Assembly: GCA_977030845.1 (NCBI GenBank)
Contig: OZ365118.1
Span: 19,592,001 to 19,656,000 of the forward strand
Origin: Fimbriosthenelais zetlandica
Taxonomy: Eukaryota
Length of the DNA: 64,000 bases
Direction: 5' to 3'
The position numbers and the translations under genes are program-made. Under the pieces are notes generated by a model. It was not told the DNA's origin. It searched no databases and saw only the letters and a program-made list of their open reading frames with translations. Every line of letters starts with the position of its first letter. Position 1 is the first letter of the stretch. Positions 5,280 through 51,021 of this stretch are shown here, in pieces.

Positions 5280-7726
5280 CTGAGATAATAAACTCAGATT
5301 ATATGTCAATCTGAACTTAATATTCGACTTCTAAATCTGATATCATTTTCAAACTTAATGCATCATATGGCCTTGTAGGATTCCCTGGTGCATTTTACAG
5401 CATGATGACTTAGTTAACATAAATCATATTTCCATGTTTCACTCAGTGTTGCACTGAGTATTGAATGACCAAAGGCCACTGTTTGAACTGATTGAAAGAC
5501 CTCTGGTTTTGACAGCGAGAGTAAGTGATTGGAAGCTGATAGAGAAGTATGACCTGGCTGTAAAGTTAGGTTGTAACCCGGGAGGTTGATCCTGTTATAA
5601 TATATTACATGTTAGACGCGCCCATCATCTGTAATTAGCTGATCTATTCATCCCACTGAGACCATGTCCCCCGCTACATTACCTCCCCTCTGGTGGCCAT
5701 GTGGCTAACTAATATAGGGTCCTCTATGATTCATAATGCATACTGTGCCTGGGGTGGTAGCGGGCATTGCTGGTCAGGGTAGGGAGGTAGAATAATATGG
5801 GGGTTGAGGGTGTGGTAGATGGTATATATACCCCCCAGGTTTTGCCCCATATATGCCTAGGGGGTTAAATTAGAAATCCTACGCGCAGACCCAAGTTATG
5901 AGGTAAGAGTACCCCCCAAGTTATGTATTTTTTACTCTATATGAGGCTTATGGAATCATAAGAAAATTTATGAGGCAGACCAAGACTTCTGGTTCTCACT
6001 CATACAAGAATTGACCCGAAGGTTCCTTATTCTCCCCTAAGGTCAGAGCAGGCAGGAAGAAGTGGTGTGAAGGAAGAAGTGAGGGGGAATAAGGGGATGG
6101 GGAAGTAGGAGGGAGGGAGGTGAGAGTTCTATTAGAACAAGCATCGAGGGAAATCATGGTATGGAAAGTATTACTTAGCACCCGGGGTCTTCTGACAAAA
6201 TGTATGGCCAGTTCTAGAGGACGGCACTGCAGGCAGTATTATTACTAATATTACTACAGGAATTTTAGTTTAATAATTCATATAGTTCCCCTGTTATTAA
6301 TAGCTTGAATATTTCCTGCAGTTCCAATTATATTGATAGTTTGAAATTTTTAGCTAAACTTATACTTTATTATTGGGTTTAATAATGTTTATATGGAGCT
6401 GTATATATATCAGATACCTGGTAGAGAGAGGTTAGAGAGTGGAGGGTTCCAGGCCTGTCTATATTAATGATTGACTCCGTCATTAAGCCAGCCTCTAATG
6501 GAGTCTGCTATGTTTTACCAGGCTCTAACTTTAATGAGCTACTCTGATTAAGTGCACCTTCCACTCTTATCTCTCACTGCTCTCACTCTGCCCACAGCAT
6601 CTCTGCTCTGCCTCATTTAGGCCTGGCTTCATGTAGGCCTACATGCTGCCCTTCTACCGGTCAGCGGATATTAGACAGACATGTCGCAGTATTCTAAAAG
6701 CATTAATACCTGATGAATATATTATATATAGAGGACATTCATCTATCACACAATTCCCCAAGAACCAGGGACTTAACATTAATAGGCTTGGTAAATGTAT
6801 ATCCCTTAATGTTCTATATAGATTTGGCCATATCCACATTATAAATGCAGGGCCTGGTAAAAAAAATCATGACAGCAAAATTTATTTTCATTCAGGAGAT
6901 CCTTTGGCGTTAAGCCCCATAGGAGCACAGTAAAATCTATAGATGTATATCTATGTGTGAATGTACCCATCCCATGCTTTATGTGATATGAAGGCCCATA
7001 CATCCGTCTGTTTTCAGTCTATGTATTTTCCGGCCCATTTCAGCAGGTCTATGGCTGACTGGGTGCGTTTAGCGGTGAGGTGGGCGTGTACCGACCAGGT
7101 TGGCAGGTAACCAGGCAAAACCTGGACCGTCAGGTTTACTGGGCTATAATAATGTTATAATAATATCACAGCATTAGCTTATCCAACTCTAACAGTACTC
7201 CAACCCCCACCTTCCCTCCACCCAAACTTCAAACTCCATCCCCCAATTCCATCTCCCATCCCCCCAATTCCTAACCCAAGCTCAACCCCCAACCCCTCCT
7301 GACACACCCTGGAATCCCTCTTCCCCCTGGCAGAACATTTTACTCGTTCCATATTATAGATCTTTAAAATGGTTCTTTTTAATTATTTAAAGAATTCCAG
7401 CAACTATAAGATGAGCTATTGCCCTGTTGAAATGCACCCAAGTACTTTCTACCCTGCCATAACATTTTACTTGTTGAAATGGCATTATTTTAATGGAATT
7501 ACTTCCACCAGCTATGAATTGTTTGAAAGGTCAATTTGACTATAAATAATAAGGAGAAGGCGGTGTGAATAAGATACATTTATTCATTATTTAATTGAAG
7601 CACGTGCAAGCACACAGGGCGCACAAACCGCTGAGGCGGGCGACTGCCACTGGTGCCCCCTACCAGGCCTGGTCAACATTAAACATGCTGAGTTATACAC
7701 CTAGGTAGATATAGCCAACATTTCAT

Positions 7727-10032: not shown

Positions 10033-10174
10033 CAACACATACTGATCAAAATCGGGGCTTTTTTTCACTTTTTCAACGCCCCATTCCAGGTGCATGCACC
10101 TGTACCCAAATTTCTACGAAGGCCATGCGATCTTTGGTGGCATCTGCGCATGCGTAGCGTTTGAGATGGAAACG

Positions 10175-10936
10175 TCACAACTCCTTACGTTTGATGATGT
10201 ATGCGTTGATCCAGATATCAGAGAGACAGACCGTCGAGTGGAAGCGGAAGAAGATGATGAGAGGGATGCAGATGTGGGCGATGATGTTCCACGGCATGAA
10301 GCCGTAGAACCTGCTATGTAGAGGCATGGTCTCAGCCTTCTTCACCTCAAACGTGTTGATCACCCAGAGTGAGAGGTTACATAGCAGAAGGAAGGTGACG
10401 AGTGTACGGCCCGGTTTGTGGTTGACATGCTCGTCGTGTTCGGCACAGCGTCTGAGCCCATCCAGGATGAAGATGGTCTGTATGGCCGCCTGGATGAATG
10501 CCAGGGCGCTGGTCCCTAGCGACAGGATCCCGATCAAGCCGTACTCCTCCATGGTGGACACGGAGGAGACTACGAGGAAAGCGTTGAACGTGCATAGGCC
10601 GAACAGGGCGATCACCAGCAAAACCGTGTCATAACTCCCCTCCTCCGGCATGGAGAAGCGCAACTGCTGCAGCTTGAAGAACCCAATGATGACTATGACA
10701 CAGCTGAGGAAGAGGAGAGTGATCTCGGTGATGTAGAAGATCAAACTGGCCGTGTCGCGATTCTCAAGCTTCTCGTCAAAGACAAAGAAGCTGCTGACGG
10801 ACACGAGGGTGAGGATGGTGACAAAGAGACCCAGGAAGAGTCCCTTGTTGGCCTTGTCACAGTCAGTCTGGTTGCTGCTGCTGTCTCCAGTGATGGTCAA
10901 TACTTGCTTCCCAGTACGGCCAACGCACTGGTACAT
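10175..10936 (-). CDS. Otop: Otopetrin proton channel, last coding exon (C-terminal TM helices)
   Basis: Family motifs DCDKANKGLFLG, KPGRTLVTFLLLCNLSLW and FYGFMPWNII...PLIIFFRFHSTVCLSDIW. Acceptor tttttctttgacag| at 10937-10938 (phase 0); TGA at 10177-10175. Confidence 0.98.
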   Translation of the reverse strand: MYQCVGRTGKQVLTITGDSSSNQTDCDKANKGLFLGLFVTILTLVSVSSFFVFDEKLENRDTASLIFYITEITLLFLSCVIVIIGFFKLQQLRFSMPEEGSYDTVLLVIALFGLCTFNAFLVVSSVSTMEEYGLIGILSLGTSALAFIQAAIQTIFILDGLRRCAEHDEHVNHKPGRTLVTFLLLCNLSLWVINTFEVKKAETMPLHSRFYGFMPWNIIAHICIPLIIFFRFHSTVCLSDIWINAYIIKRKEL

Positions 10937-11338
10937 CTGTCAAAGAAAAATAATCACTAACTTAGCAACAATTCTACTAGAATTGATCTATTTCATTACC
11001 AACTGCATGGAGTGAACTCCCCGCAAGTTATACAGTCCATATAGGCAACATCATTCTATAAGCTCTTGTGCTTCTTGTGCCTTTTCATATAATCTGTTCA
11101 AGACCAATCTATTCAATTTATAGGTCTCTGTGCAGCACATAGAAATTTATAATGGACATGTGTTGAACTAATTAACTTTACAGAAATACATCTTATTTAG
11201 GCTTTCGAAATAAGGTTGTAGTATATGACTTTGTAAGTAAGGTATGGTTTAAGTTGGGGTGATTCTTGCTCAGATTAAAGTATTTAGTAAGCTGACTGAC
11301 TGTCACATTAAAGTACTCAGTAGACGTATAGAGCTTAC

Positions 11339-11487
11339 CTTGAAGACAATAGCGGCAGCAATGAGACTGTACTCAATAGTACAAGGATAGAGGTAGGGAG
11401 CTGAGCGTCTGGCCAGCGTGTCCTCATTAGTGCACACATCCTCCATGAGCGACGTCACATTCATGTGCACGGTCGGCCCAGTTGTCA
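11339..11487 (-). CDS. Otop: Otopetrin exon (end of TM5-6 loop and TM6: SAPYLYPCTIEYSLIAAAIVFK)
   Basis: Hallmark P-x-LYPCTIEYSLI motif. Acceptor ttttctctcag| (phase 1), donor AAG|GTAAGC (phase 0). Confidence 0.97.
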
Positions 11488-14400: not shown

Positions 14401-14588
14401 GTGCTGATGTTGAGCAGGTCGTCGCCGGCAGCCAGGGTGGTGAGGGCGAGCGGCTCGTCATCGTTCTTCATGTTGCGGAAGTCCTCCGCGGTCTCCATGA
14501 TAGTGGTGAGGAACCACACACAGATGTTACTGGCCACGATGTGGGTGAGGCCAAAACGCACAAACGCCTTGTGCTTGTTGATCGTGAT
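14393..14588 (-). CDS. Otop: Otopetrin exon (TM5 and extracellular loop: FVRFGLTHIVASNICVWF)
   Basis: Matches the family FGLMH-x-x-ATN-x-CVW motif. Acceptor tgtttttctcacag| (phase 0), donor GCA G|GTGAGG (phase 1). Confidence 0.97.
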
Positions 14589-15703: not shown

Positions 15704-15864
15704 CTTATGGCTCTTGAAGAGGAAGTAGGTCTGGAAGAAGCAGAAGAGCAGGTGCATGACAGCCACCACGATGCTGATGGGGCCAAAGCAGTCGAGAGAC
15801 ATGCCATTCTCAAAGACCTGGGCGATTTTGAAGCCATCATGAATCATACTCCCTGTCCCGAAGC
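15704..15864 (-). CDS. Otop: Otopetrin exon (TM3-TM4: GFGTGSMIHDG...FFQTYFLFKSHK)
   Basis: Family FG-x-GSM and FQ-x-YF-x-F motifs. Acceptor tgttttcttccag| (phase 1), donor AAG|GTAAGG (phase 0). Confidence 0.97.
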
Positions 15865-20296: not shown

Positions 20297-20606
20297 CGAT
20301 GGCTCCAAGGCGCAAGTAGAAGTTGACCCCTTCGGAATCATGTGTCACTGCGCGCGTGGGCTGGTAGGGTTCCAGGTCCACGTCGCTGGGGGTACGGGAC
20401 CGGGACCTGTTCTCCTTGGAGTGTGAGCTGGAGATCTCACTGCTCTCCTGGACAGCGAAGGCGGACTTGTCCGGGCTGTCCAGCTGGTTGTTGGACACGA
20501 GCCGGATGTTACGGACCACCTTCTGGTCATCTCGATACCTCAGCAGGAAGGCGTGAAGGTAAATGAGGAAGAGCAGAGACACCAGGTAGATGTAGAGGTG
20601 GAATAC
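20297..20606 (-). CDS. Otop: Otopetrin exon (TM2, long cytosolic loop, start of TM3: NFYLRLGAIG)
   Basis: Family FYLRLGA motif. Acceptor tgttttatcaccag| (phase 0), donor ATC G|GTATGT (phase 1). Confidence 0.97.
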
Positions 20607-22020: not shown

Positions 22021-22144
22021 CTCCACGTAGAACGTGGGTCTACGTGCCATGTCATGAGTGAGAGCATCACTCATGGGTAGAACCAGACCCAGCACGATGA
22101 GCACCAAGGCGTAGATCCCACACAGTAGGTGTGTGATGGCCGAC
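22021..22144 (-). CDS. Otop: Otopetrin first common exon (TM1: SAITHLLCGIYALVLIVLGLVLPM...FYVE)
   Basis: Acceptor ctctcttatcttgtccag|G (phase 2), donor GAG|GTAAGA (phase 0). The hydrophobic helix joins in frame to the TM2 exon. Too short for the ORF track. Confidence 0.95.
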
Positions 22145-34293: not shown

Positions 34294-37245
34294 CTGAGGC
34301 GCTTTCCGTCAGAAATTAACGTATCAAAGACAGAAAGATGTAAAAATACAAAGCCCCTCCATGTTTTTGCTGGTCCTTCATTGTTTCCCCGTGGATTAGT
34401 AGCTGGGTGGGTTATTTGTGTGTGTGGAGGAGGGGAGGAGGGAAGTATCAAGGCTTCTGGTTGAGCCGGGGAGAGGAAGAGACGGGGTGGATGGGGAAGC
34501 CAGGAACGGCGTTAAGCCAAACAAGCTTAATGACACGCGCAAATGAAGCTAAATTAACTCATAAAACGACACGCGTGTGAAGGTAGCGATAAGGGGACAT
34601 GCTACCTCCTGACCTCAATATCTCACTCAAAAATCACCCAAATCCTCACAAAATCCAACTTTTACATCACTCAATCCTCCCAAAATCCAACCTTTACGTC
34701 ACCAAATGGCACCTAAAAAGCCCATCATCTACTCAAAAAGGTTGAGTGATTCCCATTGTTGATGTTGAAACTGATGCCTCACAGACATTGTATAGGACTG
34801 AAGGGGTACAACACCCAAAGAAATCACATTCATTTTCCTCCCCTCATTCCCTTCCACCCAATGTCACCAAAAAAAGGCTCATCAATTCCCAACTGGGATG
34901 ATTCCCTTTGTTGATTAGGAAAGCGATGCGCTGGGATGTGGCATTGTTTTGGTGAAGAGTTAAGAAGGGAGAGTTTATTCTGGATGTTCAGGGAGGTGGG
35001 GTGAATCATCAGCTGATGTCATTGTGAGAGGTCCCTAGATCTCAGTCCTCTGTCTTAATACCCAGCTCTCTCATATCACACGTTTAACGCATTATGTCAT
35101 TATCTTTATCATGATATCCTCTACATGACAAATCTCACAAAAACCGTAATTAAAAGGCATTTCTTATACTAACTCATTTTCTTTTCTATAGTCGTAAAAG
35201 AATGTCAATTATCTGCTTATTGATGAGATGATTTCACGGGGAAAAGAAGAGAAAAAAAGAGCAGAGATAACAACCAATTATGATGTGAAATATGGCAGTT
35301 TGCTGGTCCAGTTTTGTTGACTATATTGCCTTAATATTGACTGACTGTATCAAAATTCAACTTCTTGGCAACACAGATTGTCTGCTGGGCAACAACACCT
35401 CATAATGTCCTCAGTCAAATCCAAACATTTGCAAAATAAAATGAAAATATTAGTTTTTGTCTGGCCAGGCTGTGGATGGCCACGGGCCTAATTGCCACGT
35501 TTGACGTGATTGCCTCATTTCTGGCTCCGTGAACTCACAATCCGCTAATATTGAATTGTCAGATTGTCATTACCCGAAAAATGTTTATTGGGTGCATACT
35601 GGTTACCAGGGTCAAGAAGCCACTGCTAATCATCCTTAATTAGTGACATGTCTGCATATTATTACTTCTCCAGATGAAATTGTTTTGATGAATAATATTT
35701 TCACCACACACTTCATTCTGAAACACGTTCTGAATGATATTAATATTTATCTGGTGCTTTTCATGGCAGATGATGATGAGCAATAATTTGACTGGTAATG
35801 TTTTTCTGGTCGGTGTAAGCAGCAGACCTCATTTACATGACGGTAATGTAACGTCTATAAGAAGCTCTACCTTAATGTGCGAGCTGAGGAAACATCTCAT
35901 CTCCTCCTCCCATCAAGTCAGTTCCTGCCCAGTCACTCCCACCCAGCCCTCACCCAGCTCTCACACAGCCCATCTAATGCCACACAAACTGTACGTATCC
36001 ATGCTTAATGAATGTTTTCTCCCCTCCCTACCACCCATTAATCGCCTCCCATATTACAACCCTCTATTCTGTCCTCTAAGTACACACAGACACTCATCTG
36101 TCTCCACCAATTGCCTTGCCTTCTTCCCGGGTTCAGTTGTACTGCTTATTGTGCCTCCCTTAATTGCTATGTAGCAATACTTTCTGTTAGGGTGCTGTGT
36201 GTGATTATTTTGCTCTGGGATCTAATGGATTCTCACTGCATAACAACATTGTTATATTGGCTGTATATGATATTGTTATTGCGATAGCGTTTTGCTAAAA
36301 TATTCATTGCACATATATATGCAATACAGTATATATTCCCATGTCTCTTCTATAAGTGATGATGACAACATCTTTATTGTTAGTTAATGGTTTTATGGTC
36401 AGTGTCTGTAGCTTCCATGCAGCTTTTTCCACCATCGATCCATCCTTACAGGTGCAAACCTTGGGTTCCTCTCAATACATCTCTATCCACACAAAGGACC
36501 CGGGTTTGGGTTGTCAGGGGCGTGTCCAATATTCCTGCACTCAGGACATCAATGTGTACTGTGAAAATATTATTAATATTTGAAGGGACTCATTTTCCAT
36601 GATAATTGGACATCCTATAAATAGACATGTGTAACCTAAGATATGGGCATTTTTACTGCACTGGAGCCTGCCACTGATTGTAACGGCTACAATGGCTTCA
36701 CTTTATAAATAGTTTTCGACTTCATCAGTTTGCTAGTAAGGCTCTTGTTCACCTGCCATATCTTGTTTCTTGTAGCTAGCAGTATTGTGACAGTCAATGA
36801 TAATTGTCTAACCCGGTCAGACATGGCCTGCCTTACATGGAGCGTTATTAAAGTCTTCATTATTAATGTATGAAGCATGAAGTTATTACAGCTTCATAAC
36901 TGCCTCACCCAGCCACACACCACATACAGCTTCATATAGAGAGCTTCACTTATAGCCATGACCTGTCTTAATATCCATCCCTCCCACCATGGTTCCCTAT
37001 ATATACCCACTCATTGCTTCACCTTCTCCTGGGCCCTCCCTCATTCCTCCCCTCATTCTTATACACTGTAAACCCAATATGTTTAATTGACAGATCTTTA
37101 AACCAGTATTTTTATCACCCATAAGTATAAGGAGTTTTTCGATATATTTGAATATATTATCGCAGTAGAATTGCAATAGTATCAACCTTACTAGCATCAA
37201 GACTATAGTGAATATGTATAAGTTATCAGCAGGACCTTTCACAGC

Positions 37246-37512
37246 ACCTGGTCTGCTAGTGTAGACGTATTCCACCACTGTTAATTCCCCCTGCTATAAT
37301 TGACCTATAGTAAAGTATGATGACCAGCATTAAGGCTGGAGGACCCATCTTACCTGCCATACTGAGGGTGAGTCTCAGTACCTGGTCTGCTAGTTTAGAC
37401 GTATTCTACCACTGTTAATTCCCCCCGCTATACTTGACCTATAGTACAGTATGATGACCAGCATTAAGCCTGGTGGACCCATCTTACCTGCCATACTGAG
37501 GGTGAGTCTCAG
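37246..37512. repeat. 134-bp tandem duplication covering the 3' end and donor of the MACCC exon
   Basis: Copies start at 37246 and 37380 and differ by only a few substitutions. Confidence 0.95.
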
Positions 37513-37609
37513 CCTCCTCCTGTTCCTGGTCCGGATCATTCTCCTGGAAGTCATTATCATCTAGATTCTCATGGGGCTGGTGGCTACTACCTTTACAACA
37601 ACAAGCCAT
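37488..37609 (-). CDS. Otop: Alternative first coding exon of otopetrin (MACCCKGSSHQPHENLDDNDFQENDPDQEQEEAETHPQYGR)
   Basis: aagATGG Kozak context, 40 open codons, donor GGC AG|GTAAGA (phase 2), in frame with 22144. Confidence 0.75.
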
Positions 37610-38356
37610 CTTCACGTATCTCCTGCTCTAATCGTTATCACGTAGACACGGAGAGCCCGCGGTGTATCACCTCATGTCCACAGTCCTCCTCATTTGTTAG
37701 TCACCTAAAGTGCACCCCTCAGAATCTCTGTCGATATATGCTTATCCCAGGATAACTCCAGACAGGATAATAAAGCAGGATATCACCGCTGGCTGTATAA
37801 AGGTGCCAGTCGTGCCTGCATGTTGTACTGAAGTCAGTCCTTCTGAAGGCTTGTCAAAAGTCCTCACTTGGCGTGAGGTATATTGACAGGCGTATTGATT
37901 AGACTCAATCCTACTATTTCACACATGTAATGAAAGCAGCCACAGCCAGGCCTGATTACATTTAGAGCCAGCCGAATTCCAGCGGAAATTAGAACAGGCG
38001 TGAATTGAGCTTTCACAGCTCCTTTACAAAGGTGGCTTCAAAATCACGGTGCGTGGCTTCAGTAGATTGGTGGTGGACTGAGAAGAAAGCCACATGCACA
38101 CAGAAGGCCCAGACCCTGCTAGCACGTCTGAGGTGGCTGCATTTGTAGCAGGATCCCTTCACAAGATGCGGATTTACCACCAGCTGCTGCTCCTCCCACG
38201 TATAGCATCCACTCTCCTTGTCTTCCCCTCGTAACAAGGCTATTTTGGGTGCCAGCTTCCTTTACCAGCTCCAGTATTAGAGGGGAGGTTGATCTTGTAT
38301 ATGATGTATATAGGCACCTTCACCTCGCACTGCTTGCCCTGCTGTACTCCTCTACC

Positions 38357-38385
38357 CTGTATTCCCTGTATTCCCTGTATTCCCA
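38357..38385 (+). repeat. 9-bp repeat (ccctgtatt) x3
   Basis: Direct reading. Confidence 0.85.
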
Positions 38386-41300
38386 CCAGTTCATTTCTTC
38401 CCTCGGGATGACGCGCCTTTCATTCACTCAGCCCGCAAGACCTAAATGATCCCAGGGGTGGCCTTCTAAATCAATCTTCCCTTCTGAGGAAAAACCCGAG
38501 TTCCTGCCACACAAGGGAATGGTTTCCTCTCCTGCCTTTGTTTGGCGTTAAAGACTGCTTTGATGGAGCTACTCCTGTGTTGAGTGGTCTAAGAATAGCA
38601 GTAAAAGTAGACTAGTAAATACCCTGGAGTGGTAGGATGGTAGAAGTAGATGCTCTATACAACTTTAGATGTGTAGTTGTAACATGGAATGACCCCACCT
38701 CAGTCAGGGGTCATTCAGATGATCCAGGCTCGGATCTCCACTGATCTGTCCAGGCTGAATGTAAAGCCCTGCAGCTACAACACAGCCATGGAGGTCATCT
38801 AGATGTGAAATGCTTCTCCAGGCTAAACATTATTCCCCCGCTGACCTATCTGCTGCCACCTTGTTCTACTGTCGGGGGTTGAGTGGCCATGGCTGGCAGT
38901 CAAAACAACAGCCTGTCACCTCACCACGACGGAAATCTTTATCACACGTGCATAACACGCGCCTCTCACATTATGCTAATACACGCAAATGAAAGGCAAT
39001 CCGTGTTATGGGTTTGTTATAGCCGTGGGGGGAACCCCAGCTTACCTATCTCCTGTATTAATAAAGGTGCTATAGAATAAAGGCTGTGTATACACTGGAG
39101 CGTGTAATGCTATCAGAGATGGCACAACCCCTCCCACTGATTGTCTATAATTACCAGACTACAGGAGCTGCTCCTGGCGGTATGTACTGAGCAATCAGCT
39201 GATCAGAGTAACTCTCTCATCTTCTTATCACCAGCTTTCACTGTCTGGTCAACCAATTGTGCACCAGTCGTAATCAGTGAAGGCGAGACAACAAGCTCAG
39301 CCTCAATATCTGAGAGAGAGCAGAAGCAGAGCAGCTCTCTCCACTCTCCAGGGATGCAAGTATGTGAAGCCTTTTGAGACTGCTACATTTCCTGTATTGT
39401 ATTGACTATACTTCCTGAAGGAACCCCTGGTACTCCTCCTAGCTCAATGAAGCGCACCTAATTCCCACATCCAAACAGTACAGTGATGGAGAGAGAGAAG
39501 AATGGTGTTGGAGAATACGGTTACTGAGGAAATGCAATGGAATGGAGATGCATTGGAGTAGGTTGAGACGGTCCGCTTGCTCTTATGCTGAATAAGGAGG
39601 GGTGTGGGTAGAATGAAGTATACACATTCCTTACAGCTGCACTATACACTCAGCCTGGCTGGATTCACTCAGTGTAATACAGAGCTGCTCATGTGGTATC
39701 CTCAACACCATGAGCTGCTCACTCAAGACCAGGAAGATCTAATGTTGTCACGGCCAGCAAGACAATGTCCTGCCTCCAATGCTTCAGTGTGAGTGAGTGA
39801 GTGTGTGGGGGAGAGAGGCAGTCGATCCCCACCATGGTCCTCCTGAAGCCTGTCACAGGAGGAGGAGGGAGGAGGGAGAGCGGGAGGATGTGGGTCTAGG
39901 CCTCCTCGTCTCCACCTATAGATGGCCAGGCATGGTTAGGCTGCATCACCACAGCTGGGCTCCGTGCTGCTGCTCCTGTCCTGGGTATCAGGGTTGGTAG
40001 TATGGGTACTGCCTTGTCCCCCTCCTCTCCCTCCCAACCTTACATGCCATTCTCATCTACAGACGCATGCCTGCTCTCTCAACAAAAGACATTGATCGCC
40101 TCGCATTCTTGGTTCACTCACCACACATGAACTCAAGCTGTGACATTTTACGACAGTATTTGACATTTATTGTCAGTAAATTGTCCATATATGAATAGAC
40201 ATGAAGCTTGGATATAAGAGACCTATTTTTGCCCTAACAGAGCCTATAGTAACTATTGTCTGATCGTTTGTGGCTGATGTCATGTCTCATCTTTCGTCTG
40301 TAGTTTACCCACTGTTTCAATCCGCGTGTTTGTGTGTGGAGAATGCTGGCTGCTGCCATCAAGTAATGACCTGGTCGACCCCTGGGGAGAGATGGCCGAA
40401 TCTACGTCTCCGCTCCATCCTCAGATCCCAGGAGCGTGAGCCAAGCTCCGACTAGAAGACCAGATTACAACCAGAGCCATGCTTCAAATCCAAACCTTTC
40501 AACCGTGATAGAAGCAGAAGGACAAATAAAGCTTTTGTTGAGGGTGGAGCTTTTTTGTTTGGAGACAAATAAGAGGGCTGGGTAAGAGAGAGAAAGTAAG
40601 GGATCAAAGAATGTGAAGTTCAAAGATAGAGGGCTGAGGGTGATTAACTCCAGCTGGCAAGCTAGGCCAATCCCAGGCATCTCATTTCTCTGCTATTCCA
40701 CCTTTACAGATATCCCCTGGCATTTGGCACATGAGCTAGCTTATTAAGGGTATTTAAACCCTAAAAACCTCATTCATTGCGGACTTTTCTGCATATTTCT
40801 CATGGTGAATTAAGCAGCAATGCCTTACAGGGTATTGAGGCAGTGTTTGGCTGAGCTGCTCAGTCAGCTCACTCAGCTGGCCTCACATTGTTTACAAACA
40901 TGAGCGAGACAGGAGCAAAGTGCCTGCCAGCCAAACGCCAGCCAAACGCTGGAACAAAAGACGAGACATGCAACGCACGTGCTGGCAACTAAAGCATGCC
41001 TCCATGTAGCACGGCAAAAGGCAAATGTGACCAACAATGCAATGATTTAAATGTTCTTAAACACAAAACGCTTTGCCATCCTCACAAGAAGTACATTTAT
41101 TGACGTTTAACATGAATTAAAAGTCCCAACTTCCATGAGAGAAGCTGTTCATAGTCGGTATTTGACTACAGTGAATAGAAACTCTGAACAATATAGGGCG
41201 TGAGCTCCTTGTATGCCCCAGGTGTTCAATACAGGGCAAGAAGCTAGTGTTTCTAGGGTTATGAATGTAGGTTATAAGGTACGCGTGTGGTAGGTGGGGG

Positions 41301-43232
41301 GTGGGGTAGCACCAGGGTAAATGGTTGATATATCAGTGTCAGACACGCACCTGTATCCAATATTTATCACTGGCTCATATTTACTTCATGAAACATTGAG
41401 GCATGTAGTGTGGGGGTGTCCCAGTATTAGGGGTGTGTCCCAGTGTTAGGGCTGTGTACCACTATTAGGTAATCATCTATATGGAGGTCATATCGATCAT
41501 GTGTGACAGCTGACAGTTCCACAGATGTGCCTCAATAAGGCTGTAATAACACCATTACTCTCATTTTTATCACTAGCTGCAAAATTGGGGCATCATGTGA
41601 GCTGCTCTGAGCCTGGGAAATGCTCGGTCAGGGTGGGACCTGCATCACAATGCCAGGAGACTGGTTCCTTTAGTCGCCATAAGGTGGCTTCTACGCCAGG
41701 CCCCGCTCCGCTGCCGCTCACTGTTTTTCTCCCGGAAGCCACATTGCATGGCTTTCATTTGGTAAGAGCCCAAAGAGAGATCCCAAGCCTGAATACATCA
41801 AACAAAAACCCCCACTCCAGGCCTGTTCTCACCGCCCTCCTAGCTGTAATGTGCACGATGAATTAATGTGCTGTCAGTGGTTCCTTGAAACTTTTTATCA
41901 TCAATTTTAAATCTTTATATTCACTTTATAGCATTTTCCCAGTTGTTAAAAAACCCAACAAGAGTCAGCTGGCGTAACTATATCTCATGCAATGGGAGTT
42001 TTAAACTCCATTATTTACACTGAGGGCAACGCTTTCGGTGCTCCAAAAGTTTGCCATCTAATTTTAATCGATAATTACCCCGCACTTTGGCTGGATCCGA
42101 CACGTTTCAGGGCTGTCACATAAATATTTCTGCCCGTTTGGGTTTTTACTTTTTATCCAATGTATCAGACAGACTGATGTATAAGGTTTTTTTACTAGAA
42201 TATAAATGGACTGTTTGAAATTCTCCCCTTTGAGATCGACTGAGTCCAGCAAACATTGAGATTGATTGCCAATATTGGGATCAATTCTCCTCTAGCTACA
42301 AACTCCGCTGAACTTATTGGCTCAGTGTGAGATAAAATGTGGATAGAAATAACTGGGAAACAGGTAGCAGACTAAATGCTGTCTCACCCAAATATGGTTA
42401 AAATGGTGAGCAATCATTGGCCGCAGTTGAGGCATGTTAGACGGCCTTAGAGACAGTGGTGAATTGATGAGGACAGTGAGAGGATTCAGCCACCTCCTCA
42501 TTGATATTCTAGCTGTGAAGCCCTCTACCAGTCAACTATAGCCGCCAGTTTACACACATTCACATTACACATGCCTGTACAATCACCTGATGACCATCTT
42601 ACGTGACAAAAAATAATGTAAATGTAAGCCTACAGGTGGCACTCTGAGTGTGGACAGGAAAATAGCAACATAAAGTATTCATAGTCTCTCCATTTATATA
42701 GCTGCACTCCTCCTTCAAACAGAATTCATCATCACACATTAATTTTTCATATACTTCATCTCCCACAGTCGTATTATTGTCCTGTTGCTATACCCGTACC
42801 TCTCCACTTTTTCATTCCCTTATAAAACGATTTTTAATGCCACTCAAGTGTTTTTTCCAATCACATACATCCCACATGTTCCCTGAAGCATTGTATAATC
42901 CCAGTATGAACCTGTTAATTACCTTGGCACAATGCTGTCTAAACCGATTACAGATACATACATACTTATAAAGAACATTGACCCAAACCCTTCATAATAA
43001 TCTTCACACCGTATACCTCTTCCACATAATTGCTTTAGGAACAAAGGTTAAAGGTGAAACATTGAAGAAATATGATGAAGAATACTAGGTCTAAGGTCCC
43101 GTATGTAATATAAGAAAGATGTATAGATGTATAGGAAGGGGAAGCTGATGCACCAGATGAACATAAGGCGTTATTGAAGCGCAAAAATGGCATTACGCGC
43201 GCTGAATGACTCTACCAAAATAAAGGCACGTG

Positions 43233-43287
43233 GAGCTATAGAAGTGCTAGCTATGGCTATAGAAGTGCTAGCTATAGAAGTGCTACC
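43233..43287 (+). repeat. Short repeat (gctatagaagtgcta) x3
   Basis: Direct reading; lies just inside the intron after the 43320 donor. Confidence 0.85.
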
Positions 43288-43319
43288 ATAGCCCCAGGCT
43301 GTACCCAGCCTATACTCAC

Positions 43320-43417
43320 GCCTCAGACTGCTGGGCCGCCTCAGGAACATACGTATCCTTGTTCATATTGACATTTGACCGTCCTTTAGTCACTAATTGA
43401 TGTTGAGTGGTCGTCAT
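43320..43417 (-). CDS. Otop: Alternative first coding segment of otopetrin (MTTTQHQLVTKGRSNVNMNKDTYVPEAAQQSEA)
   Basis: gaaATG at 43417, 32 open codons, donor GC|GTGAGT (phase 2). Confidence 0.65.
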
Positions 43418-43424
43418 TTCCTAC

Positions 43425-43453
43425 CTGGAGAACCCTCCTCCAGGGCTGCTCAT
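43425..43453 (-). CDS. Otop: Alternative short first coding segment of otopetrin (MSSPGGGFSR), or uORF
   Basis: agtATG 22 nt after the predicted TSS; donor TCC AG|GTAGGA (phase 2). Confidence 0.55.
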
Positions 43454-43470
43454 ACTGCTAGCTGTAAAAG

Positions 43471-50917: not shown

Positions 50918-51021
50918 CTGAGCATGGAGCTATCATCAGTACACACATCCCCAGTGTTAATGTCGGTGGATGTATCCAGCCACCTGTACTGTAGATTATC
51001 GTTATCCCTCTGTGTACTCAT
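50918..51021 (-). CDS. Otop: Alternative first coding exon of otopetrin (MSTQRDNDNLQYRWLDTSTDINTGDVCTDDSSMLR)
   Basis: attATG, 34 open codons with an in-frame stop upstream, donor CTC AG|GTGAGA (phase 2). Confidence 0.6.

Follow-up and report, generated by a model that had tools for sequence, protein, structure and literature searches.

The otopetrin gene and its exons

The window, meaning the whole 64,000-nucleotide stretch of DNA that was analysed, carries on its minus strand an otopetrin gene that is probably to be read as an OtopLc-like gene of seven coding exons, in which a first coding exon for an acidic tail with putative acylation of its cysteines is spliced to position 22144. Exons 2 to 7 of this model were placed by tblastn with an orthologue, P0151, together with inspection of splice sites. 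Exon 2 (22021-22144, 124 nt), which follows the acceptor ttgtccag|G and encodes (R)SAITHLLCGIYALVLIVLGLVLPMSDALTHDMARRPTFYVE, contains the first transmembrane segment (TM1) and has homologous segments in Dimorphilus, P0151 and two further relatives, L009 and L015. Exon 3 (20297-20606, VFHLYIYLVSLLF ... GVNFYLRLGAIG), which is entered in phase 0 and left in phase 1, and exon 4 (15704-15864, FGTGSMIHDGFKIAQVF ... FLFKSHK) were located by tblastn with P0151 and by their splice sites. Exon 5 (14463-14588, ITINKHKAFVRFGLTHIVASN..., with an approximate 3' boundary) and exon 6 (11339-11434, ...LARRSAPYLYPCTIEYSLIAAAIVFK, with an approximate 5' boundary) were located by matches to the Pfam Otopetrin domain and by tblastn with P0151. 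The last exon (10175-10936) comprises 253 codons and a stop codon and encodes the C-terminal half of the Otopetrin domain (PF03189, E 1e-63). The PF03189 scores are 216 bits for the last exon and 44.5 and 34 bits for the exons at 14.5 kb and 11.4 kb, against a gathering cut-off of 27.8, and exon 2 aligns to TM1 of P0151, P0013 and the Dimorphilus protein, in a family whose members have a tail ahead of TM1. When the last exon was compared with 1.8 billion representative proteins, 1415 otopetrin matches were obtained, the best being DgyrCDS8062 of Dimorphilus gyrociliatus with 64% identity; matches from Pecten, Lingula, Tubulanus and others carry the source name 'proton channel OtopLc-like'.

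There is no in-frame ATG in exon 2 ahead of TM1, and thus the gene must have a further coding exon upstream that ends in a phase-2 donor; the TM1 exon is not sufficient by itself. The stretch 37488-37609 is very likely to be the exon in which the coding sequence of the otopetrin gene begins, and reading frames are consistent from its ATG at 37609 through exons 2 to 4. For annotation, the gain would be a start codon for the otopetrin gene and the coding exon that holds it, which ORF-based tracks missed. Pfam searches of ten larger ORFs in and near the big intron detected no other gene (a match to Herpes_UL95 was ignored because its 15.8 bits fall below the cut-off of 24), and an Rfam search of 36500-38500 gave no match. 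Downstream of the otopetrin gene, a 250-codon ORF at 1876-2628 on the minus strand, rich in Glu/Asp, His and Pro (METSHDQRSTSGEESE...) and with no Pfam match, is a possible exon of a neighbouring gene.

Sequence features of the first coding exon

The coding part of the exon is 122 bases long, which is 40 codons plus two bases, and its peptide is MACCCKGSSHQPHENLDDNDFQENDPDQEQEEAETHPQYG(R), with an opening of MACCCKGSS followed by an acidic run. The start codon occupies 37609-37607 on the minus strand in the context gtgaagATGGct (aagATGG, with A at -3 and G at +4). Codons 3 to 5 (37595-37603, TGT TGT TGT) encode three consecutive cysteines that are followed by Lys6 and form a candidate S-acylation site, with His10 and His13 nearby in the same peptide; residues 14-34 include 11 Asp/Glu and no basic residue. 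The exon ends in phase 2 at base 37488 with the donor CAG|GTAAGA, beyond which read-through would meet an immediate stop codon (AGG TAA), and the first eight bases of the intron (37480-37487) are GTAAGATG, where the likeness to the related species treated below as organism A comes to an end. The Kozak context, the cysteines at positions 3-5 and the acidic stretch all lie on the minus strand where the original prediction had placed them, and both the phase-2 donor and the acceptor that it had proposed are present: the exon ends on AG, the acceptor at 22144 would supply G to complete a codon for Arg, and SAITHLLCGIYAL follows. Translation would start at 37609, the exon would encode a 40-residue, probably disordered and strongly acidic cytosolic tail, and a phase-2 splice (AG|G) would carry the frame over a 15.3-kb intron onto the TM1 exon.

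Upstream of exon 2, every minus-strand ATG frame that ends at a phase-2 GT was scanned with a simple donor score. There were 853 such ATG/phase-2-GT pairs, of which 23 had a donor score of at least 5.5, and the MACCC exon was the only one of the 853 to combine a full Kozak context with the top donor score of 7.0 and a long open frame; the score of 7.0 was shared by two Kozak-poor candidates with a common donor at 50918. This ranking favours more than chance in a way that is suggestive, not decisive.

A tandem duplication spans 37239-37506 as two copies of a 134-nt unit (37373-37506 and 37239-37372) that are 93% identical, and the first copy takes in the final 19 nt of the exon together with its GTAAGA donor. 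Except for this duplicated end and donor, the exon occurs once in its own genome, where a search with the exon peptide found no second copy. The duplication leaves a decoy exon end and donor after 37354, inside the intron, and use of this donor would add 134 nt including an in-frame stop. No further copy of the 134-nt unit was found in the genome, and the intron of organism A is unlike it. The 40-residue peptide matched none of the proteins of 22-70 residues against which it was compared, longer proteins being outside that search, and a degenerate DNA pattern for DDNDFQEND had no match in JGI metagenome contigs.

Conservation of the exon in organism A

Contigs of organism A from runs X1-X3 were aligned to window positions 37470-43469 with a likeness of at least 80%. 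Each of these three runs has one contig (5.7, 19.5 and 4.2 kb long, each at the single-copy depth of its run) whose alignment is confined to 37480-37609, and run X5 had no contig that aligned to 37470-43469. The conserved block is 130 nt long with 25 differences and no gaps, runs from the A of the ATG to position +8 of the donor, and has at least 255 unlike letters on each side. The organism A contigs are genomic, and thus the alignment is evidence of conservation, not of splicing. The 13 differences that could be listed individually are those more than 31 nt from the ends of the alignment; the other 12 fall within 37480-37510 and 37579-37609, the second of which includes the cysteine codons. 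Third codon positions take nine of the 13 listed differences (binomial P = 0.009); the 13 together change seven codons synonymously and replace four residues, two of them conservatively, such that codons 12-33 read PHENLDDNDFQENDPDQEQEEA in the window and PHENLDDNDFQENDQDQDEEEI in organism A. For the same 13 differences, the Nei-Gojobori pN/pS ratio is 0.11 (pS 0.81, pN 0.09; Fisher 8.6e-6). Conservation is therefore limited to the ORF, with the frame kept and an excess of synonymous change, and the block, its third-position bias and its low pN/pS together imply a real coding exon under purifying selection in the proposed frame. Coding on the opposite strand of the block was rejected, because the changes would fall on its second codon positions and no splice sites flank the block. 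Pieces of about 35 nt at 39782-39893, 41178-41214 and 42948-42982 match many different contigs of organism A and are probably dispersed repeats or fragments of low complexity rather than conserved elements.

Orthologous genes and their cytosolic tails

The orthologue of Dimorphilus gyrociliatus has the layout of the window gene: a single 55-codon 5' coding exon (MLSTIRNKWHNVRVVGASDD...) ends at the phase-2 donor GA|GTAAGC, and the acceptor cag|A, about 800 nt downstream, opens on the same SAITHLLCGIYAL as exon 2 of the window; its tail is unrelated in sequence and has no cysteine. At this locus (L005:4304-11654, GCA_904063045.1), a single otopetrin gene is divided in the public annotation between two models: one of 271 residues covers the 5' half and runs on into an intron, the other, DgyrCDS8062, covers the 3' half from an artificial start, and a repeat-rich intron of about 4.5 kb separates them. 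P0151 (L007:335-2299) is an uninterrupted CDS of 654 codons on a 4.2-kb JGI contig and, since its relatives have introns, must derive from a spliced transcript; its last exon is 69% identical to that of the window gene. Its tail of 78 residues begins MGNRQSGNYQ, from an ATG in the context accATGG with an in-frame stop upstream, and continues with RSAITYLLCGIYAL.

A metagenome scaffold of another relative (L009), with a last exon 74% identical to that of the window gene, has exon 2 at 6817-6939 in the same phase as the window gene. Upstream of it there is nothing similar to the MACCC exon, and the only strong phase-2 first-exon candidate, recognised from sequence features, is L009:2863-2993, with 43 codons, an acidic run and CCVRFCCRC adjoining the junction; a search for homologues of its peptide gave none. 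In the relative L015, exon 2 was located and a walk upstream gave no convincing first exon.

Lophotrochozoan otopetrins of the OtopLc-like kind (Dimorphilus, P0151, Pecten, Lingula, Tubulanus) resemble the window gene in the Otopetrin domain, in the near-identical opening of the TM1 exon, (R)SAITHLLCGIYAL, in a last exon that is 61-69% identical and in a short tail exon that joins the TM1 exon in phase 2, but they differ in the tail itself, which begins MLSTIRNKWHN... in Dimorphilus and MGNRQSGNYQ... in P0151 and in none of them MACCC. The tail of the MACCC exon has no recognisable similarity to the tails of Dimorphilus, P0151 or L009, and a pair of cysteines within the first 20 residues was found in none of 199 retrieved homologues. 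In homologues, the cytosolic tail ahead of TM1 is anything from 3 to 390 residues long, and this variable N-terminal region of otopetrins has mostly been ignored. The relative L006 (Logan accession ERR14368249), compared with window positions 10075-10952, is 92% identical in nucleotides and 99.6% identical in amino acids over the last exon and 68-88% identical over the 3' flank, whereas the tail exon is 81% identical in nucleotides in organism A. From these sequence comparisons, the channel core appears to be under very strong purifying selection, in contrast to the tail, which on account of its lower nucleotide identity and the unrelatedness of the orthologous tails is a fast-evolving, lineage-specific region.

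The claim that the exon is an otopetrin first exon thus holds insofar as a real 5' coding exon, conserved in organism A between its ATG and its donor, has a phase-2 donor that fits 22144 and an architecture shared with Dimorphilus. Conservation in relatives, which the original prediction had tied to both the frame and the cysteine cluster, extends to the frame in organism A; the cysteine cluster is absent from Dimorphilus and P0151, and the candidate first exon of L009 carries CCVRFCCRC.

Principal or alternative first exon

The exon was originally described as an alternative first exon, and it may well be the principal one instead. It is improbable that MACCC is one of several mutually exclusive first exons, with a canonical start elsewhere, such as MSSPGGGFS (43453-43425, with a TATA box ahead of it), and with MACCC confined to a specialised palmitoylated isoform. 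MSSPGGGFS ends CAG|GTAGGA in phase 2, and it is accompanied by further upstream combinations of an ATG with a phase-2 donor at 51021-50918, 51975-51821 and 35973-35954, but sequence alone would be expected to yield about 20 such first-exon candidates in 42 kb, and the Dimorphilus orthologue and the P0151 transcript have a single tail each. The MACCC block is also the only conserved candidate within 37470-43469, a point of little weight because the 29-nt coding part at 43453-43425 is probably too short to be detected; the candidates at 51 kb and 35.97 kb lie outside the stretch that was compared.

It is less likely still that the exon is real but belongs to another transcript or is internal, whether because transcription begins farther upstream (at 43.5 kb, say), because a non-coding exon is spliced in ahead of the ATG or because the exon joins a partner other than 22144. 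For an internal exon, there are AG sites upstream of the ATG (tag|AGCAGG at about 21 nt and tttag|GTGACT at about 100 nt) and one X2 contig that joins 37609 to 43347, but these sites are weak, inspection of the 5' flank of 37609 revealed no good polypyrimidine acceptor, and the flank is not conserved in organism A. The joint itself was rejected because its second side is only 26 nt long at 80% likeness in a genomic contig, where such joints are unreliable. Membership in another transcript is opposed by the want of any other gene signal in the 15-kb intron or nearby, and a different partner by the phase and Arg codon, which match the junctions of orthologues. That the exon is only a chance ORF in intronic or intergenic DNA is very unlikely, for although an open frame of 40 codons has by itself a likelihood of about 15%, chance would not account for a block bounded by ATG and donor that has no indels, a third-position bias and a pN/pS of 0.11.

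The candidate at 35973-35954 is a mini-ORF of 20 nt on the minus strand, known from its letters only, that encodes MGCVRA in the context tagATGG and ends TGG|GTGAGG in phase 2. If joined to 22144, it would read MGCVRAG-SAITH..., with a dual acylation motif of the Src/G-alpha-i type (Gly2, Cys3), and it may be due to chance.

A putative lipid anchor on the tail

Judged by its sequence, the MACCC exon seems to be mostly a matter of ordinary gene structure, to which a plausible motif adds a modest, testable hypothesis. Clusters of cysteines at the N-termini of GAP-43 (MLCCMRR), G-alpha q/11/14 (MACC/MAGCCC) and PSD-95 (MDCLC) are S-palmitoylation signals, and where a membrane protein has a cytosolic tail with clustered cysteines in its first five residues and a basic residue behind them, the setting is typical of S-acylation. 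The tail encoded in the window opens M-A-C-C-C-K, with cysteines in the first ten or so residues beside a basic residue, and shares with those proteins the presence of two or three cysteines in the first five residues, the lack of Gly2, the basic residue that follows and a cytosolic N-terminus. It differs in that GAP-43, the G-alpha proteins and PSD-95 are peripheral proteins that owe their membrane binding to the lipid, whereas an otopetrin is a channel of 12 transmembrane segments, in which the possible effects of acylation are limited to tethering or shaping the tail or to sorting of the protein. The N-terminus of otopetrins is cytosolic (PMC6483595), and from this topology Cys3-5 should be exposed to the cytosol. 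Provided that the exon is the real first coding exon, S-palmitoylation of Cys3-5 is a distinct possibility that falls somewhat short of being probable. A DHHC enzyme would S-acylate these cysteines, the end of the tail would be held at the inner leaflet, and the acidic remainder of about 35 residues would become a membrane-tethered loop ahead of TM1 that could affect sorting or gating. Targeting of the MACCC form to rafts or cilia, which had also been proposed, is pure speculation. Searches of the literature found no link of otopetrins to palmitoylation and no lipidation of an otopetrin.

The three cysteines might otherwise, with His10 and His13, form a metal-binding or redox-sensitive motif, or they might be a functionless, lineage-specific feature of a disordered tail, with no lipid in either case. 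This explanation, which is rather unlikely, agrees with the unrelated and mostly cysteine-free tails of orthologues and with the much faster evolution of the tail than of the core, but it is opposed by the fit of a cysteine cluster followed by lysine to the S-acylation context of GAP-43 and G-alpha, and by the purifying selection on the tail as a whole.

Returning to a lipid anchor, the start of P0151, MGNRQSGN, fits the N-myristoylation consensus G-{EDRKHPFYW}-x-x-[STAGCN]-{P}, and such a start would make a lipid-anchored tail somewhat more credible; the Dimorphilus tail has no motif of this kind. It is a tentative and on the whole unlikely extension that the annelid-type OtopLc tail is lipid-anchored in general, with the anchor re-invented in each lineage: as S-acylated MACCC in the window gene, as N-myristoylated MGNRQS in P0151 and possibly as a juxtamembrane CCxxxCCxC cluster in L009. 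On this view, the acidic tail, held to the membrane as a loop, would control sorting or gating.

In CeOTOP8, an N-terminal segment inhibits the channel (PMC11343839), and the likeness to the window gene is that a cytosolic segment ahead of TM1 regulates the activity of an invertebrate otopetrin (PMC11343839). The inhibitory element of CeOTOP8 differs in being a structured loop beside TM1 (residues 50-57, with Trp54), with no sequence similarity to the MACCC tail and no lipid (PMC11343839). CeOTOP8 nevertheless shows that otopetrin tails ahead of TM1 can matter, and a lipid-anchored tail, if true, would be a new regulatory feature for a small family of proton channels.
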